Assembly: GCA_965112735.1 (NCBI GenBank)
Contig: OZ218956.1
Location: 1,426,001-1,490,000, forward strand
Direction: 5' to 3'
DNA from: Phaeosaccion multiseriatum
Lineage: Eukaryota > Protista > Ochrophyta, other classes
Length of the DNA: 64,000 bases
The notes below the pieces were generated by a model. That model did no database searches. It had not been told where the DNA came from and was given only the letters and a program-made list of their open reading frames with translations. This document shows positions 3,901 to 32,540 of this stretch, one piece after another. Every line of letters begins with the position of its first letter. Position 1 is the stretch's first letter. A program made the position numbers and the translations under genes.

Positions 3901-6900
3901 TGCTACTGCTGCTATTGAACCCCCCCTCCTTTCGTGGACTCTCACTACCACCAGATCCAAGTGGGGGTTGGCGGCGACGGCGGGGGCTGCTACTGAAGCT
4001 GCTGCGAGGGGAACCAGTGAGCGATCTGGACCGGAGGCGTTCAGCAGACCAGTCTCCGCTCCCCTCATTGGTCTGGCCTTGCACATGATGCCCTGAGAAG
4101 GTTTTCTTCCACCCCCTACGCACAGCGGCGGAGAGTGAAACAGAAACCGAACCTGACACGGAGCCCCTCATGCTCCACCCGTCGTCCTGCTCGTCCTGCT
4201 CCTCCTGCTCCTCCTCCTCCTCCTCCTCCTCCTGCTGCTGCTCCTCCTCCTCCTCCTCCTGCTGCTGCTGCTGCTGCTCCTCCTCCTCCTCCTCCTCCTC
4301 CGCCTCCTCCTCCTCCTCCTCCTCCTCCTCCTCCTCCTCCTCCTCCTCCACCACCACCTCCTCCTCCTTTGTCTCCTCCTCCTCCACCACCTCCTCCTCC
4401 TTTGTCTCCTCCTCCTCCTGCTCCTGTCCTTCGTCCACCCCTCCCCCCTCGTCTTGGTACCCTTCACCCATCCTATTCCGCTGGTCATGGCCAGCAAATA
4501 CGAGAGGCCTCCCACCGCAGCTATATAGTTTTCCCGAGGGGGGCGAGGGAGAGAAGTCTATAGGAACAATCGTCGTACCAAAGGCTTCGGAGCTGATCGA
4601 GGCACCAGGGCTCGCAGAGGGGAGGGGTGAGCAAGGAGAGCAAGAAGGCCCCACATGGTGGTGGGGCATCGATGGCCTCGCACCCCCCCGGGAGGAGGAG
4701 GTGGCGATGGCGATGCCTTCTTGTCGGTTGTCCTCCTCCTCCTCCTGCTGCTGCTGCTCCTCCTCCTCCTCCTCCTCCTCCTCCTGCTCCTCCTCCTTCT
4801 CCTCTTCTTCCTCTTCCTCTTCCTCCTCTTCCTCTCCCTCCTCCTCCTGCTGCTGTTCTTGTCGCAACTGCGGCTGCTCGTGTGAATCTCGAAGTCTCAT
4901 GTCCGAGCTCCCTTCCTGGGGCAGCCGAACCCTTCCGCTGTCTCTGTTTCCGTCCGACTGTAGCGCCCGCGTACCGGCGCTTGTTCTCTTCCTTCTGCCC
5001 CCGCTCCTTGCTACTTCTTTCCCGTCCCTTTCCCTGTCCTCTCTTTCCTGTGGCCTCAGTTTCCCCACGCCTCCTCTGTGACCTCTGCCTGCGGCCTTGC
5101 TGCCCTTGCTGCCCTTACCCCCCTTGATCCCCTTGCTTGCCTTGCTTGCCTTGCTCGCCTTGTTGGCAAAGAAGCTGCCTTCTCGGGCAAATCCTTCGCT
5201 TCCGTCGGTGGTGGTATCAACGGCGGGGGCACTACTGCTCATGCTGCTTGCGCTCTTGCTTCGCCGTCTTCCTACCGCCAGACTAGTGCCACGGGCGTAC
5301 GGTGGAGTCTTCTCGCCAATGCCGCCGCCGCCGCCGCCGTTGCTGCTGTGGCTACTTTCTCCTCCACCTCCCCGCCGCTCCTGCTGCTGCTTGTCCTTCC
5401 TTCTCCGAGCTCTCTCCTCCCTCCGTTCGGGAGAGGGAAGCTGACCCCCCATGACCACAAAGAGGTGAGCATCCGTCGCCGCCCCCTCCAGGCGACTCTT
5501 GGGTGAGCTCGGATGCAGGTTGAGGGCCTTGACGTTTACAGTCAGCGGCAGCGGACGCGACACCGGTGACGGCTGAGGAGGGGCCGCTACCACCCCACTG
5601 TCACCCATCCCTTCTTCCTCCTCCTCCTCTTCCTCCTCCTCCTGTTGCTGCTGCTGCTGCTGCTCCTCCTCCCCCTGCTGCTGCTGCTGCTGCTCGACGA
5701 CTTCTTTCCCTCTGCCCCCTCCCCTCACAACAGCGGCCGTTCGGGGAGCGTCAGCCGTAGCACCAACAGCCTGACCTAAGCCATCTGTCAGATCCGCTGG
5801 AACCCTTTTCGCGCCCCCCCACTCGGAGTCTACGTCAGAGTCCCTGTGCAGCCAATTGGTAATCGATGTCTTGTCCTCCTCCTCCTCCTCCTCCCCCTCC
5901 TCCTCCTCCTCCTCCTCCTCCTCCTCCTCCTCCTCCTCCTCCTCCTCCTCCTCCTCCTCCTCCTCCTCGTCCTTGTTATCCTCATCTTCCTCCTCTTCCT
6001 CCTCCTTGTCTTGCTCCTCTTCCTCTTCCATGTCTCGCCCCCCCTCCACCTCCGCCTCCTCCTCCGCACTTTCTCGAATACTCTTTTTACGATCAAACAC
6101 GGGAGAGGGAGACTGTGAGGTCGAGGCAGAGGTGGGGGGCGATTCAGAGTCTGAGCCGAAAAGGGAAAGATCTCGCTGCAACTGCTGCTGCCGCTGCTGC
6201 TGCTGCTGCTCCTCCTCCTCCTCCTCTTTCTCCCGCTGCCGCAGCTGCTGCTCCTCCTGGCGCTGCAGCAACCGAAGTGCCTCCCTCTGTTCCTTAACCC
6301 GAATCTTCTTCAGCCTTCTCTGCTCCTCCTCCCACTGGTGCAGCTCCGCAGGACTGGACACAGGCCGTAGGCTGCCTGCCCAGCAGGCACTGGTCTCCAC
6401 GAGAGGGTTCGCCCTCATGCTGTTAGGCCCTCCTTCTCCTCCCCCTCCTCCCCCTCCTCCCCCTCCTCCTCCTCCTCCTCCTCTTGCTGCTGCTGCTTTC
6501 TGTCCTGCCTTGGAATACACGCTGCCATGACGCTTCGCACTTTCAGACTTCGAGGCCTCGCCGGAGGACATTCTCCGAACGAACTCTCGCTGGCGAGCAG
6601 CCGCACTGATTGCTCCTGGCTCTACTCCTGCCCTCTCCCTCGCCTCTTCCTCCGGCGACGCCATGGACGCCACAGATGGCGAAGCAGAGGGGGCAGAGCG
6701 AAGAGAACCTGAGAGCCAACAGTCGGAGGAGAGATAGAGAGAGGGAGCGTGTGAGAGAACAGAGAGAGATGCTCTACGCAGCAAACAAACAAACAAACAA
6801 ACAAAACAAACAAACGAGCCAACCCACCAACAAACCAACATGGCGCCACAACCACTCACAACTCTTCCCCCTTTCCTTACCTGACCAGCTCGCCTTAGGC

Positions 6901-20473: not shown

Positions 20474-21199
20474 AAGACAGTTCGTGACTTAGGTCGCATT
20501 TGGATCGGAGCTGAGCGGAGCCTGTGCGAAGCTGCTGGTGGGTTGAAGCCGTCGGCATAGAAGAAGGAAAGATAGAGGCGGCAGAGGGCAAGGAGGGGGG
20601 AGGCAGAGCGGGCGCGGCGCGGCTCAGTTTAGTTGGTGCGAGCCTTTAGTAGCGGTCAGGAAAGGGGCGGGCAACGGAGTCACAGCTGGCGGCCCTCTCT
20701 TGTCCCACGGCAAGCGGGTGCAATGGACGCGTGCGCGCGAGTGTGTGTGTGTGTGTGGGTAGGTGCGACACTTGCTTTCGGCGCGGGAAGGGGCACAAAA
20801 GAGCGCTGTGCGCCCAATCGAAGGTAGACAGCAGACCAGAGCCGCTTGACGGCTAAAGGGGCTCGAGAGGCTGCGGGTCGTACACAACACCCCTCCTTCA
20901 CCCTTCTCGGGGTACCCATCAAGACGGGACTCAATCCTCTGTGGCGATGCCTGGCCTCACGATACATGCTTTCTAATCAATTCTGAAGTTCGATTTTTAT
21001 TTTTTTTGATATTTTCTCCTCCTCCTCCTCGTGCCCTTCTTTCCCACCTGTACACTACTCCGCTCCACGCTTCCCCCCTTCCCTCTATTTACCTTATGTG
21101 TCTATTCTTCTCTCTCTCTGTATGTGTGTGTGTTGACGTATAATCATCACACGAGCAAGGGATACATAGGACGGGAGTGCGTAGCATGAGGTGCGTGCA

Positions 21200-21555
21200 C
21201 ATCCATCCATCCATCCATCCATCCATCCATCCATCCATCCATCCATCCATCCATCCATCCATCCATCCATCCATCCATCCATCCATCCATCCATCCATCC
21301 ATCCATCCATCCATCCATCCATCCATCCATCCATCCATCCATCCATCCATCCATCCATCCATCCATCCATCCATCCATCCATCCATCCATCCATCCATCC
21401 ATCCATCCATCCATCCATCCATCCATCCATCCATCCATCCATCCATCCATCCATCCATCCATCCATCCATCCATCCATCCATCCATCCATCCATCCATCC
21501 ATCCATCCATCCATCCATCCATCCATCCATCCATCCATCCATCCATCCATCCATC
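21200..21555. repeat. Perfect (CATC)n microsatellite, about 89 units
   Basis: Directly visible uninterrupted array. It is the source of the spurious MDGW/HPSI ORFs. Confidence 0.98.
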
Positions 21556-22223
21556 GATCAACCTCCACGAGCCACACGGCCGCGCGGAGATGACTGGAAA
21601 GACAAGAGAGAAGAGCGCTTCTCATCCCTCCATTTCCCTCTCTTTCTTTCCCTTCTCTCCCCTTTCCTTTCCTGATCCAAAGCAAGATGTGGAGTGCAGG
21701 TAGATAGGTGATTGTGCGACTTGCATGTCCATATGACTGCCTTCTGCCATTTGTGACACCGGTTGTCGCTCTCCCACTGCCGGTAGCAGCAAGGCTAGCA
21801 GGTGGTCACTCTGCCCAAGCCCATCACCTTGACTTACTTGAGCACGGGTGGGGGCAACGCAGCTGAGGCTTGGAGCTGCCAGCAAGGCTTATCCTTTCAG
21901 TGCGGATTGCCATGCGTGCATGCGTGCATGGGTGCGTGCGTGCATGTGTGCGTACGTGCGTGCGTGCGTGCGGGGCCTCCTCTCGGTAGTGCTCCTCTTC
22001 TTGCCGGCCCAGCCGCGCTGTGCAGCACCGGCATACTATATCACACTGTGCGCCACCGGCAAACCTCTGTTTGGTTCGCTTTGCTTTGATCCTTTGGGGC
22101 GCTGCTGTGGCCAGAGTGGGTCTTGCCTTCTCTACTGCAGCCCATCGCGATTGGTGAAGCCCATCGCCATGTACAGGATGGAGCAGTTGCCCCCCCCCAA
22201 GCAAGTAGCCTTGAGGGCCTGCC

Positions 22224-25968: not shown

Positions 25969-28900
25969 TCAGTTCTCCTCCTCCGAGGAGTCGTCTCCTG
26001 CCGGATAGACCACCTTCCTCGCCGCCAGCGTGGCCCCGAGTACAGCCAGCTCCTCGGAGTGCAAGGGGATGATGAGCCCCTGCTGCGGACGGAAGACACG
26101 CTTCGCAAGGGCCTGGGGAAGGGGAGGGGGGGGGGGGAGAGCAAGACAAACCACAGAACAACAACAAGGGGGGGTGCAAACGATTTGAGATTCGGCGGCT
26201 ATGGAGTGGGTCTGAGTAACCACAGCATATATGGCTCTGCACAACGCCAGAAAGACGCCCCCTTCCTTCCTTCCTTCCTTCCTTCCTTCCTTCCTTCCCC
26301 TTCTCTAAGGACGCCCCCCCCGGTCTCTCCAACCCCCGCTACACACCCACACCCACACACCCACACCCACACCCACCCATCTCCTCACCTGCACGGCCGG
26401 CACTCGAGAGCCGCCCCCAACGAGCAACACGCCATCGAGCTTGTCCACCGACACCCCTGCCCTCACCAGGGCCTCCTCACAGGGCCCGGCCACTCTCTGC
26501 AGCATGGGGTCCATTTGCTGCTCGAGTTGTGCCCGACTCAGGGTGGTCTCGAGGTGCTTGGGGCCGGTCATGTCTGCTGTGATGAAGGGGATGTTGACGG
26601 CAGTGGACGCCTGCTTTGAGAGGTCCATCTGCGGGTAGGGTGGGGGGGCGGGTGGGTGTGAGGGGGGGAGGAGATGGAGGTGAGGGAGGGGAGGGGAGAG
26701 AGGAAATAGGGGGGCAGGGTTAGGATCAGCTATAGTTTCGTCGTACCCCGCGGAGGTGTGCGGGGGGGGGGGAGTAAGAAGCGCACGGAGGAAGAGATGG
26801 GAGAGAGGAAGGGACGAAGGATACAGGGACGGACTGGAGGGGCAGTGGGGAGGGAAAGATGTGGCACCGTCATGCCATACTTTCGGGCAGGCACCCTGCG
26901 TCCTGCCTGCTGTCCACACCCCTACTTCGACCGATGTACGACGGGGGGGCATCTTGGAGAGAGAGCGGAGAGGGTGAGGTGACCGACCAATCACCGACTA
27001 ACAGTCCGAAGTGACCAACTACCAACCAACCAACCAACAAACCAACCAACCAGTCCCACCCAACCAACTAACCAATCACCAGACCAACCTTGGCCGCCTC
27101 TGCTGCCTCGTAAAGCCGTGGGAGCGCCATCTGGTCTTGGAGGAGAGAGTTTGCCCCTACATTGGCCTTGAGGAAGTCTCTGTCCATCACCTTCACCAAC
27201 TCGTCCTGCACGCACGCACGCACGCACACACGCGCGCAGTGAGCGATTGTGCAGCGCATTGTTCATGAGAGGACGAGAGAGAGGGAGGAGAACGAGAGTA
27301 GTATGTATGTGTGTTCGTGTGAGAGGAAGAGAGGAGGAGGAAGGGAGAGAGTGTGTGTGAGACTCTTCCCTCACTACCCACATGCACTCACGCACTCATA
27401 CACCCACCACCCACCTCAAGTAAGTCTCCTCCGGCCTTGGCGGTCCAATCATTCCCTACCACACGGACCCCTCCTTCACCAGCGTCCACGATGCTGACAG
27501 ATGTGGCCCTCCCTCCCATGTCCACCACCGCAAAGAGGCCACCCTGCAGTGCAAGTAAACAAGGGGCCATCGAGCGCAGTCATGTGTGAGGCCGAGAGAA
27601 GGAAGGAAGGAGGAAGGAAGGAAGAAAGGAAGGAAGCAAGGAAGGAAGGAAGGAAGCAAGGAAGGAAGGAAGGGAGGAAGCAAGCAAGCAAGGAAGGAAG
27701 GAAGGAAGGAAGGAAGGAAGGAAGGAAGCAAGGAGAGGAGAGGAGAGGTCAGTGAGGAGCGAGCGCAGTCACGCATGAGGCATAGGCAAGAAAGGAAGGA
27801 GAAGAGGAGGAGCGGGAATGTCTGTCGGTCAGCGTGCCCCAGCCTCAGCAGGTGTGTGCTACCTGCACCAACACCTCCGATTAGTCAGCAGGTCTCAATG
27901 AGGTGTGCGCTCTGCCCAATCTTTTCCTTCCATCTCTCACCTTGGCTGGCAGCGAGCCTGTCTCCATGGCGGCACTGACCGCAGCGGCGGCGGTGTCGAG
28001 CACCCCCAGCACCACCAAGCCGGCGCTCAGAGCAGTGGTCTCGTATAGAGAGCGTTGTTGCTCTGTAAAGTACTCGGGCACAGTCAGCATTGTCGCTCCT
28101 CTAGACCCCACCTAACATTGGGCAAGAGCAAAAGAGAAGGGAAGGGAAGGGAAGAGTGACGAAACGGAAGAAGGGGGGGCAACACACACACACACACACA
28201 CACTGAGAGCGAGAGAGAAAGACAGAGAAGGAGTCTGGGAGAAAGAGTAAGGAGAAAGAGAATAGAATGTGAGGAACACCAAATTTGAGCCCACAGAGAG
28301 CCGCAAAGTCTGGTCTGGGCCAAAGCCCAACCCTCCACCTCTACCTTAAAGATGGCGAGGTCCATCATATGCTTGAGCATGGCTGCGGTGACCTCCTCTG
28401 GCATGATGGTGCCCCCCCCTCCCTCGGCCCCTGCCGCTACCCAGTCCGCCTGAATGGCCGCCAAGCCCTCCTCAGACGCCTTAATACCGTACTTGACAGA
28501 GCTGTGAGACGGTAGAGAGGGAGAGAGAGGGAGAGAGAGAGGGCCCCGGGGAATGACGTTGTCATTGATGAGGAGGAAGGCTTACGACGTTCCGCGTACA
28601 TATCGCGTTTGCTCCTCCTGCTGAACACCCGCCCCGCTCCATCCTTCCCCTCTCCTTTTCCTTACCTGGCTATGTCCTGCACCGTAGGGGAATCGAACTC
28701 GGCCCCGAGCAGTCCCTGAGTGCTGTAGAGGGTGCCGGCGGGGTGTGTCCAGCGATTGGCCCTCGCCAATTGCCCGACGAGGGTGTCTTGGCCGCTTTGG
28801 TAGTACACCGCCGCAGGTGTCCAGCGCATGCCCTCTCTGCGCAAGCAAACAAAAGAATCAACAAGCGTGTCATGCCGCGCATGCGTTGGGTGCGTGAGTG

Positions 28901-30045
28901 CGTAGTTCTTCTTGTCTAGTCTACGTTGCGACTTCTCGACGTGGGGTTCTGAAAAGATGGAAAAATCGGGCGAAAATGAGCAAAAAGACGCCCCTTCATA
29001 TTGTGTAGCAGCCTCCTTCACTCCCACAGGGCTAGCACGCCAAGAGAACAAAGAGTCACACAATACCATCGGACTTGGTCGGCACAGGGCATAAACACGT
29101 TAAAAAAAGACGTATTAATGAGCCTCTTCGGCCCGCAGGCGTGGAGACAAGAACAATTCATGAACAATTCATACCCACACACACGCGCACGCACACACGC
29201 ACCTGTTCTCTACAATCTCTGGACCTTTCTCGAGCCCGTCCGCAAAGGCCAGACGCATGCTTGTGGTGCCAATGTCCAGTCCAATGGCCGGCCCCAGGTG
29301 CCCTACCCCACCAGCACTAGCTCCTCCCCCGGCCCCGTCTGTCGCACTGCCCCTTCCCTTCTTCCTCTCCTCATCTTCTAATTCTTTCATTCGCCTTCCT
29401 GGGAAGCAGCAGCAAAAATATCGACAGAGGCGTTGGGGGGCTGCGTTCGCGGCCAGAGCTCAGCTCTCACGGCAAAAACAATCCTGACTCCTGTACCATC
29501 CAAAGTACTTCCCATCACCCAGCGCTACCTTTTCCGACTTCTACGTACCGACTCTGAGCAGGTAGCGGATGCCGGAGGCCGCCAAGGCGACCCCGATTGC
29601 GCCCACTATGATGGGAACAACCTCTCTCTTGGGGGATGCGTGGAAGTGCGAGCACTGTCCATTTCGGCACGTCATCACCACCTACTGGCGAAGAGTAGGT
29701 CAGGCGAGAGCAGATGTGTGAACGTGAAGACGGCTTCTGTCCGCCAAACGCTCCGCCTCTCTGAAGAACCCGCACCATCTTCTCCCCTCTCCAAGAAGAG
29801 TCAACTCCGGAATCAATCGCAGCAGCAGCTGCAGCAGCAGCAGTAGCAGGAGAAGTAGAAGAAGCAGCAGTTGCCAAAGACGTATCCTCTCCTCTTACCG
29901 TGCTGTCTTGCTTGCTCTTTCTGCTCCGCCTTCGCATGGCCTGCGCTGCCGCAAGTGTGGTGGGCACCTCCACTCCCCCCGTCGCAGCGGCCTGCCGAAG
30001 TGTAGCTGAAGCCGCCGACAGCAGCGGCCGCATCAGCACCACCAT
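25969..30045 (-). CDS. Atypical Hsp70/DnaK-like protein: predicted mitochondrial presequence + TM anchor + nucleotide-binding domain only
   Basis: Exons 30045-29776, 29681-29549, 29398-29203, then about 28836-28666, 28500-28325, 28091-27941, 27544-27416, 27206-27088, 26629-26388 and 26112-25969. Motifs GLDIGTT, ENREGMRWTP, LTVPEYF, VNIPFITADMTGPKHL and LLVGGGSRVPAVQ. The stop falls right after the end of the NBD. Confidence 0.85.
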
Positions 30046-30296
30046 TTCGAGACTTCTCCCACACCTTTTTGCTTTATTTATGGCCACGATGATGACACAC
30101 ACCACACACACCAACCCTGTGAATCTCGACCTTCGGCATGTGGTGATACGCGGAGGAAGCCCGAAGCCCCGAAGCCTCGGTTTTGGGAAGGGGATGAATA
30201 AAAGAGGAGAAGCCGTTCCCCCACCCGTGCCGCGGGAGCGACTTGTCGATCCTTTTGTTCTCCTCCTCTTATGAAAATCGGAGGACTCAATTAAGC

Positions 30297-30410
30297 ATGG
30301 CATCCACGTCTTCCGGAGGTAGGGGTGGGGAAGGTGAGGGGGGAGGTGGCTTCAGCAGCAACCGGGCAGGAGGCAAGCGACGACCGGTGTATCTGGACGA
30401 AGACCTTCCG

Positions 30411-30449
<39 letters not shown>

Positions 30450-32540
30450 GGAGGAAGCGGCACCAGGTACAAGGAAGGTGTGATACTCGTGCGGAAGACC
30501 CAGAAAGCGAGCATGACCCTGAAGGAGGTGAAGAACGTGCCCTACGAGTTTGCCGAGGGGCTCGTGCCGGACTATCTGCTCGGGGACAATGCCGTCATAT
30601 ATATCGAGACCAGCTACCACCAAAGGGACCAGAACTATGTCGTCAGACGACTTAAGGAGGTTGGAAAGGTGAGAAGAGAGATGGACAGGTGCGCGGGGAG
30701 GGGAGAGCAGCTCCTTATGCCCCCCCCCTCCCGTTCTATGCCCATTTCGTGGAACCGCCTATCTTCGTCTCTCTGGCCCCGCGCCATTTTCTTCCCCCGG
30801 CTTGCCAACTGAATGACTGACTTTCGCCACCCAACCACCCACCCCCCCCCCCCGCTCCGCTCTACAGGCACATCGGCTGAGGATCCTCCTGTGCGTGGTG
30901 CGCCAAAACTACGACAGCGAGCCTCTGCTGCAGTCCCTCAACGAGCTCGCGCTGCTTCACGACTTCGTGCTCCTCCTCGCTTGGTCACACGCAGAGGCTG
31001 CGCGCTACCTAGAGACCTTCAAGATTTACGAGAACAAGAGGTACACACAGGCACCTGCATGTACCCCATGCACCCAATCAGATGTGACCCAGCCGGTGAC
31101 GGCATTCAGCAGCAGCAGCGATATGGGGAACTTTCGGATCGTGGGCTCTCTCGCAGTAGTCGCTTGCCCTCTCTTGCCACTGCTCCGTCTCTCTCGTCTC
31201 TGACCTGCTGATGTTTCTCCTCCTGCTGCTTCTCCTGCTACTGCTCCTGCTCCTGCTCTTACTATGGCTACGGCTACTGCTCCTCACTCCCGCTACCATC
31301 CGCCGCCTACCACAAAACGGAACCAAACCAACCAACCAACCAACCAATCAACCAATTCAGCGCGTCCCTCATCCAGGGAAAGACAGAGGATGACTATATG
31401 TGGCGGCTTACCAAGGCCTTGGCTGCCGTTCCCAGCGTAAACAAAACCGATGCACAGACCCTGTCCTCCAACTTTGGCTCATTCAAGGCGCTCTGTCAAG
31501 CCACGACGGAGGAGCTGGCGCTGTGCCCCGGGGTGGGGGAGAGGAAAGTGCTGCGCTTGAGGGAGGCCTTTCACGTGCCCTTCGCGGGGGTGTTTCCCGG
31601 GGGGGCTGCTACTGCTGCTGCTGTTGGGCCCTTGTCAAAGGGGGTCCCAGGGGGAACAGGGAAAGGGAAGGGCAAGGGCAAGGGCAAGGGCAAGGGCAAG
31701 GAAGGAGAAGAGGGGGAAGAGGCAAGAAGCAGTGTTGGAAAACGGCAGAGCGTGAAGACGAACGCCACAAAGAGAGGGAGCAAGAAGGGCCAAGGGTTGG
31801 GCGCGGAAGCAGCGGCAATGGCAGCAGCAGAGGCCGTTGTCGACGAGGCAGACGAAGTTGCTGCCGCTATACAAGCAGTGGAGGAGGAGGAGCGAAGAAG
31901 TAGCGGCGGCACCAGCAGTGCAGATGACTTTGAGGATAGCGACGACAATATGCGAAGGAAGAAGCAACGGCAACGGAAGAAGCAACAGGAGGAAAAGAAG
32001 CAGAAGCAGCAGCAGCAGCAGAAGAAGAAGAAGAAGAAGAAGAAGAGACAGGAGCAGGCGCCGCCATCACCGCTGCGAGGCCGCGAGGACGGAAGAGAGA
32101 GCAGCACGACTTCCATCAGCAGTGGTAGTACGCTGCCAGCCTCTTCGATCTCAGAGGGGCAGCCGAGCCTGGAGAATTGGCTGCAAAGGTGGCTGGAGAA
32201 GGGTCGCGCTTTACCTTCCCTGGTGGAGACCTTCCCTCAGTGGGAGACGAATTTGGCTTACGTGGTGGAGCAGCAGGGGGCGGACGTCGAGGCGGCTCTA
32301 GACGCCGTGAAGGAGCAAATGAGGGAAATCGAAGTGGAGATGCAGCAGCAGCAGGAAGAGGAGGAGGAAGATCAGGAGGATAGGGATGGGGGACGTGATG
32401 GAGTTGAGCAGGAGAGCAAGGACGGCAAGCAGGGCGGGGAGAGGCGGCGCCAAAGGGACAAGCTGGTGGGTATGCGCTTCCTGGCGGACTTTATGCAAGC
32501 CTTGCTGGCGCAGCACTTGGTGGTACAGCAGCCGCCATGA
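30297..32540 (+). CDS. ERCC1: DNA excision repair protein ERCC1 (Rad10) with long C-terminal extension
   Basis: Exons 30297-30668, 30868-31040 and 31361-32540. Motifs NVPYEF..VPDYLLG, LLLAWSHAEAARYLETFKIYENK, VPSVNKTDAQTL..FGS, and the HhH motif LALCPGVGERKV.RL.EAFHVPF. Confidence 0.93.

Follow-up and report, generated by a model that had tools for sequence, protein, structure and literature searches.

What can an Hsp70 do when it consists of a nucleotide-binding domain (NBD) behind a membrane anchor and little else? The question is raised by a gene on the minus strand (30045-25969) of a 64,000-nucleotide stretch from the ochrophyte Phaeosaccion multiseriatum (contig OZ218956.1, positions 1,426,001 to 1,490,000; hereafter the window, in whose coordinates positions are given unless another contig is named). 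A first-pass annotation, made by eye, had described the product as a membrane-anchored, NBD-only, catalytically degenerate, mitochondrial Hsp70-like protein. Our analysis suggests, with a probability of roughly 60%, that the protein is a conserved chimera in which a Tim14-type anchor is joined to a catalytically degenerate DnaK-type NBD, and that it would act as a pseudo-chaperone at the mitochondrial inner membrane, tuning the cycle of the mitochondrial Hsp70 (mtHsp70).

The gene model was obtained by reading the minus strand between 25700 and 30400 and translating each proposed exon separately. It is a coherent gene of ten exons (534 codons in total) separated by nine GT...AG introns of 150-460 nucleotides with compatible phases. 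The Pfam HSP70 profile matches exons 4, 6, 7 and 9 in that order, with exons 4 and 9 above the cut-off and exons 6 and 7 just under it, and the G+C content at third codon positions (GC3) is 0.58-0.83 in exons against about 0.5 in introns. The parts of the gene are as follows (TM, transmembrane; NBD residues are numbered as in Escherichia coli DnaK throughout):

30045-29899, minus strand: exon 1, 49 codons; basic, Ala/Ser-rich, presequence-like N-terminus, read from the predicted start ATG at 30045.
29681-29549, minus strand: exon 2; pre-TM motif, TM helix and the start of a basic juxtamembrane flank, together a Tim14-like anchor module.
29645-29622, minus strand: octapeptide-like motif FHASPKRE, directly ahead of the TM helix.
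29621-29562, minus strand: predicted TM helix of 20 residues; mean Kyte-Doolittle hydropathy over 19 residues, 2.04.
29398-29203, minus strand: exon 3; basic/acidic linker rich in Gly, followed by the first part of the NBD (phosphate-1 loop, D8 kept).
28836-28666, minus strand: exon 4; NBD lobe IA/IB, with Q for the catalytic K70 (codon 28716-28718) and G for R71 in the next codon; PF00012 match at 5.4e-7.
28501-28345, minus strand: exon 5; NBD lobe IB, variable region.
28111-27941, minus strand: exon 6; NBD lobe IA, with G for the J-domain contact R167 and D (27997-27995) for E171.
27543-27415, minus strand: exon 7; NBD lobe IIA, with the phosphate-2 loop at 27522-27499.
27205-27089, minus strand: exon 8; NBD lobe IIB helix, with the equivalents of E267 and K270 kept.
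26628-26389, minus strand: exon 9; beta-sheet of lobe IIB with the DnaK-type motif (26598-26551), then lobe IIA with G341, G342 and R345 kept; PF00012 match at 1.4e-18.
26112-25969, minus strand: exon 10; last NBD helix, the ending A-R-x-x-x-Y, an acidic tail of 11 residues and the stop codon TGA (25971-25969).

Exon 1 has no match in the homologues described below, whose N-termini are variable. Its translation contains 8 lysine and arginine residues against 2 aspartate and glutamate residues; in frame 0 its codon score is +0.42 and its GC3 0.73, compared with -0.17 and 0.39 in intron 1, and its donor, GTAAGA, is the best among the frame-compatible donors. Exon 1 is a plausible part of the gene on these features, and the ATG at 29675, within exon 2, could serve as an alternative start.

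The first-pass annotation had treated this locus as a single odd gene, while naming stramenopile orthologues of the same architecture as something to look for. Such relatives exist. When exon 9 was searched against 1.84 billion representatives, it recovered full-length proteins in which the exon-9 region is located about 430 residues in and just 35-50 residues from the end. At least ten homologues share an identical architecture, which starts with a basic N-terminus and a single hydrophobic helix, continues through a basic/acidic linker into the NBD and finishes at a conserved A-R-x-x-x-Y. They include proteins of Tribonema minus, Phaeothamnion confervicola, Ascophyllum nodosum and Scytosiphon promiscuus, with further members from Tribonema gayanum and MMETSP transcripts (Trinity being among the transcript-derived ones), a divergent pair and several metagenomic genes. 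The full-length homologues (n=9) align colinearly with exons 2-10 of the window gene, sharing 35-44% identity with it, and their ends fall within a few residues of position 26005; five of the homologous genes have no introns and terminate in genuine stop codons, with unrelated genes coming next. Family members are 30-54% identical to one another by subdomain. Judged by these matches, the window gene belongs to a conserved family known so far from ochrophytes, among them brown, yellow-green and related algae. In database entries, proteins of the family carry the labels 'unnamed protein product', 'Hsp70 protein-domain-containing protein' or 'DnaK', and full-text literature searches found no paper describing such a protein family. 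A kelp HSP70 survey (PMC13312973) lists a protein of 469 residues for which a 'signal peptide' is predicted; the shortest HSP70 of that survey, SjHSP70-03, could not be linked to the algal family.

Two observations concern individual members. One divergent member, CAE7477486.1, is annotated as 'dnaK [Symbiodinium microadriaticum]' and lies on a 4.2-kb contig, its nearest relative being found on metagenomic contigs that are intronless; either the dinoflagellate assembly is contaminated at this point, or the family could reach beyond ochrophytes. In Tribonema minus, four further, degenerate tandem copies of the exon for the conserved IB-loop segment, one with an in-frame stop, lie downstream of that exon in the homologous gene (positions 6067-6654 of the Tribonema sequence), and these extra copies are duplicated mini-exons inside an intron.

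By both profile match and fold, the conserved domain is an NBD of the Hsp70 superfamily. It is complete and DnaK-type, and in the window gene and all homologues the protein ends at the NBD boundary, with neither an interdomain linker nor a substrate-binding domain (SBD). In every homologue the Pfam PF00012 match covers only positions 1-372 of 599 (E-values of 1e-43 to 1e-74). An AlphaFold2 model of a Tribonema homologue has a predicted local distance difference test score (pLDDT) of 86.7 overall and above 90 in the NBD, and its best matches in the PDB are the NBDs of DnaK and mortalin (target-normalised TM-score 0.90-0.94, root-mean-square deviation about 2 Å); residues 62-105 of the model form a single long helix that spans the TM segment and its flank. 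Downstream exons encoding an SBD, which would have contradicted the NBD-only description, are lacking in the window: tblastn of a complete plastid DnaK matches the NBD exons only, with 26 kb downstream of the gene covered, and a genome-wide scan with the HSP70 hidden Markov model (HMM) detected no SBD fragment near the locus. Neither a DnaJ nor a Pam16 Pfam match was obtained in any window exon or homologue. Both the hydrophobic segment and the NBD-only architecture proposed by the first-pass annotation therefore stand, the latter shared by homologues that end at the same point.

The nucleotide site was assessed in an alignment of family members and DnaKs into which the window exons were entered as fragments, with the following result:

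D8, D194, G196 and G197: kept in the window gene and invariant in the family.
K70: Q in the window gene; Q in most members, otherwise H or P, never K.
R71: G in the window gene; not kept as a rule in the family.
R167 (J-domain contact): G in the window gene; never R in the family.
E171: D in the window gene; E or D in the family.
G198: R in the window gene; R in six members, otherwise G, L or Y.
T199: A in the window gene; A, T, S, V, G, L or I in the family.
D201: S in the window gene; S, Q or A in the family.
Adenosine pocket E267, K270, S274, G341, G342 and R345: kept in the window gene; K270 lost (L or M) in two members.

The catalytic set of canonical Hsp70s (D8, K70, E171, D194, T199 and D201) is incomplete, with K70, T199 and D201 changed in the window gene. 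The degenerate site described by eye is thus borne out at five positions (K70Q, R71G, G198R, T199A and D201S), and the DnaK-type motif of exon 9 is kept, as had been claimed; the replacement of E171 by T, also reported, came from a misalignment by one residue, and this position is in fact conservatively retained. In Hsc70 and DnaK, mutagenesis has established that loss of the K70/K71 lysine alone abolishes measurable hydrolysis. The most economical reading of the alignment would be an NBD that does not hydrolyse ATP and perhaps still binds nucleotide. Identity of the family to true DnaKs is 0.33 in subdomain IA, 0.22 in IB, 0.28 in IIA and 0.47 in IIB, whereas among the DnaKs themselves IA is the best kept (0.72); constraint has therefore moved from the catalytic core towards lobe IIB.

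The resemblance of the anchor to Pam18/Tim14, which had been noticed by eye, was evaluated by profile-profile comparison. A profile built from window exon 2 and four homologues was compared with a profile of 20 stramenopile Tim14 sequences, and hhalign returned a match with a probability of 96.3% (E-value 1.5e-9, score 54.1, 45 columns) that spans the non-hydrophobic pre-helix motif, the helix and the basic flank. In 150 column shuffles the mean score was 11.3 (standard deviation 2.6, maximum 20.9), so that none of the 150 reached 54.1, and the reversed profile scored 12.7. On these scores, the apparent homology to stramenopile Tim14/Pam18 is statistically solid for the whole N-terminal module, from the pre-TM motif through the TM helix to the basic flank. 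The anchor alone gave nothing useful against PDB sequences, and the ESM Atlas yielded no usable match.

The pre-helix motif also bears on how the protein might be processed. A motif of the form R-x-[FLI]-x-x-[STG]-x4, which ends between -1 and +3 residues from the TM start, occurs in 8 of the 10 family members and in 11 of the 20 Tim14s, with Y at the aromatic position in most other Tim14s, and it fits the classical 'R-10' consensus for processing by the mitochondrial processing peptidase plus Oct1. The mature form of animal DNAJC19 starts at the TM helix and, by analogy, if an R-10-type site were used, so would the mature algal protein. Whether by homology or convergence, both families should share a biogenesis route. 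That of Tim14 ends with the C-terminal domain in the matrix, and the strongly positive C-terminal flank of the algal helix agrees with a C-terminal domain on the matrix side. Besides this flank, the basic leaders and the Tim14-like module lend indirect support to a mitochondrial inner-membrane protein whose domain faces the matrix.

The origin of the NBD was addressed with a maximum-likelihood tree (25 rows, 377 NBD columns, LG+C20+F+G4), the kind of Hsp70 phylogeny that the first-pass annotation had put forward as a check. The family forms one clade with 100/99 support, and its nearest matches outside the family are bacterial DnaK and mitochondrial Hsp70. The family NBD is shown by these results to be DnaK-type. 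The cluster names of ten full-length matches in the representative search, bacterial DnaKs, were uninformative. The placement of the NBD within the DnaKs is another matter, as the family stem, 1.46 substitutions per site long, attaches to a polytomy of DnaKs. The mtHsp70 exons on contig 13 of the same genome group with Babesia mtHsp70 and alpha-proteobacterial DnaK. In approximately unbiased (AU) tests, neither a grouping of the family with the mitochondrial/alpha-proteobacterial sequences (log-likelihood difference 0.37, p 0.42) nor one with plastid DnaK (3.64, p 0.29) was rejected. As a statement of descent, the 'mitochondrial Hsp70-like' of the first-pass annotation goes further than the tree does.

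The genome also carries canonical genes for Tim14, Pam16, Tim44 and GrpE, besides mtHsp70 on contig 13. Given that all of these are kept, the NBD-only protein is an addition to the set and not a replacement for one of its parts. The nearest match to the genome's Tim14 is the Nannochloropsis gaditana protein (64%). A near-identical second copy of the Tim14 J-domain exon and the adjoining AN1-type zinc-finger gene was observed (C1:2751667-2754813 versus C15:1798908-1802102), and points to a segmental duplication; the C1 copy has no N-terminal anchor in the same open frame and may be a truncated or pseudogenised Tim14 paralogue.

A protein of this kind would be imported into mitochondria and processed, and would then be anchored in the inner membrane as Tim14 is, with its NBD in the matrix. 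The NBD would hydrolyse ATP barely or not at all, possibly while binding nucleotide, and the protein would act through protein contacts, for which the conservation of lobe IIB points to GrpE/Mge1 or another NBD. The outcome would be a tuning of the mtHsp70 cycle at the membrane, in parallel to the NBD-only HSPA13/STCH at the Sec61 translocon. Of the options, contact of lobe IIB with GrpE/Mge1 or with another NBD is the most attractive, but it is speculative, as are the partners and any role in the import motor; homology of the anchor alone is not proof of association with TIM23. A narrower version, which we consider doubtful, would make the protein a lineage-specific subunit of the ochrophyte presequence-translocase motor: a copy of the Tim14 anchor would hold it beside TIM23, where lobe IIB would capture Mge1/GrpE or dock mtHsp70 and so set the local rate of nucleotide exchange or recruitment. 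The role of J-protein decoy, once suggested for this protein, is unlikely, as both the J-domain contact R167 and the interdomain linker are absent in every member.

Several points weigh against an inner-membrane pseudo-chaperone with a Tim14-type anchor. The gene model was derived from sequence alone, exon 1 being predicted only, and location, binding and activity are inferred on the same basis. The adenosine-pocket residues differ among members (K270 is L or M in two), and therefore nucleotide binding may not be universal. Both the mitochondrial and the plastid DnaK lineage are compatible with the AU tests as the source of the NBD. As for the anchor, the window gene has no arginine at -10 of the putative processing site, the anchor profile compared with the same genome's own Tim14 alone gives a p of only about 0.004-0.008, and a whole-genome search with the anchor profile returned only the Hsp70-like gene itself. 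Given these weak single-genome matches, the homology signal rests on the profile-profile comparison, and the likeness to Tim14 could also have arisen by convergence on a common targeting signal. Finally, in yeast and animals a presequence followed by a TM helix more often acts as a stop-transfer signal, which leaves the C-terminal domain in the intermembrane space.

Among the other explanations, the one that survives best, although we think it unlikely, is an active membrane-tethered ATPase of the Hsp70 type with a rewired site, in which the phosphate-2 Arg or the Gln at position 70 would permit peptide-independent hydrolysis as reported for HSPA13/STCH. The NBD fold is predicted with high confidence, D8, D194, G196 and G197 are retained along with an E or D at E171, and the replacements are themselves conserved, since most members carry Q at position 70 and six carry R at position 198, so that the site looks maintained and not decayed. 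The absence of the lysine, which by itself abolishes measurable hydrolysis in other Hsp70s, argues against such activity, and positions 198, 199 and 201 vary among members, contrary to the expectation of one new catalytic solution.

Somewhat less probable still is a signal anchor of another membrane, that of the endoplasmic reticulum (ER), the periplastid compartment or the plastid envelope, with a merely convergent likeness to Tim14. This explanation gains from the tree, in that the NBD could equally come from the plastid DnaK lineage. The kelp HSP70 with a predicted 'signal peptide' would also fit, provided that it belongs to the family. However, the match to Tim14 includes the non-hydrophobic pre-TM motif and is lost on shuffling or reversal, and the N-termini contain many arginines, few acidic residues and, by eye, no obvious signal peptide with a plastid motif of the ASAFAP type.

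The idea of a decaying remnant, that is, a truncated copy of an organellar Hsp70 that drifts neutrally or is unexpressed, would account for the lost catalytic residues and the very long stem branch. It is hard to reconcile with ten open exons, nine intact GT-AG introns and a coding-type codon bias, with the identity retained within the family, and with the persistence of the truncated architecture, its end point and the family motifs across several algal classes, transcripts included. The truncated architecture is real, old and under selection; both this reading and that of a missed exon are very unlikely. The latter, in which the model is wrong and an SBD is encoded downstream or elsewhere and joined through a missed exon or trans-splicing, has in its favour the way in which the model was derived and is scarcely credible given that no SBD-like exon occurs in the 26 kb downstream or, in the genome-wide HMM scan, near the locus, and that five intronless homologous genes stop at the same residue.

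The surroundings of the gene were also inspected. Long microsatellites of the type (GGAA)n/(CCTT)n lie within two introns of the gene on the minus strand, intron 6 (27600-27760) and intron 9 (26255-26310). An ERCC1/Rad10 DNA-repair gene is arranged head-to-head with the Hsp70-like gene (30243-32540, plus strand), with the Rad10 domain in its first open reading frame and an HhH2 domain in a later exon; it starts about 250 bp from the ATG at 30045, and therefore a bidirectional promoter is probably common to both genes. The next minus-strand gene downstream of the Hsp70-like gene encodes an EF-hand protein. Further along, at 21090-21700, a perfect 12-nucleotide tandem array produces long open frames in several frames on both strands ('DGWM' and 'HPSI' repeats), and is probably a non-coding minisatellite.

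The nearest analogue that has been studied is HSPA13/STCH, a microsome-associated animal Hsp70 that is likewise NBD-only and that, in association with Sec61, modulates import (PMC9691929). The two have in common an Hsp70 NBD with no SBD and an N-terminal hydrophobic segment ahead of the NBD. They differ in that HSPA13 is of the eukaryotic ER/cytosolic Hsp70 lineage, whereas the algal family is DnaK-type, lacks K70 and has a Tim14-like anchor (HSPA13 was not placed in the tree). Orthology with HSPA13 was rejected on account of the DnaK-type lineage of the family, whose origin appears to be independent. HSPA13 keeps its catalytic residues and ATPase activity.

The anchor half is comparable to Tim14/Pam18/DNAJC19, with which the family shares a basic leader, a pre-TM motif, a single TM helix and a basic flank followed by a charged low-complexity linker; in contrast to those proteins, it has no J-domain and no HPD motif, carrying an Hsp70 NBD instead, and a canonical Tim14 co-exists in the same genomes. 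The NBD half has the complete DnaK-type fold of DnaK and mtHsp70 (Ssc1/mortalin) and keeps the lobe IIB motif, but the family lacks the linker and the SBD, is changed at K70, R71, R167, the canonical G198/T199 and D201, is only about 33-36% identical to these proteins and forms a separate long-branch clade. Regulation of a canonical Hsp70 by a relative with dispensable ATP hydrolysis is known from Ssz1/HSPA14 and Hsp110, the former being a stable J-protein partner and the latter an exchange factor that works through NBD-NBD contact. Unlike the algal proteins, both keep (modified) SBDs, are cytosolic or of the ER, belong to the eukaryotic lineage and have no membrane anchor.

NBD-only Hsp70s are, to our knowledge, rare and poorly understood, with HSPA13 as the sole studied case we know of and its role at Sec61 only now emerging. 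The present family appears to be an independent, DnaK-type version of this design, conserved across several major algal classes, and its members, under their current annotation labels, may be misclassified in surveys of the HSP70 family. They offer a clean natural experiment on the capacities that remain to an Hsp70 NBD when hydrolysis, linker and SBD are gone. If the inner-membrane location is true, evolution would have placed an NBD-only Hsp70 next to a protein-conducting channel on more than one occasion, and the mitochondria of ochrophytes would possess an additional regulator of the Hsp70 cycle, specific to their lineage.

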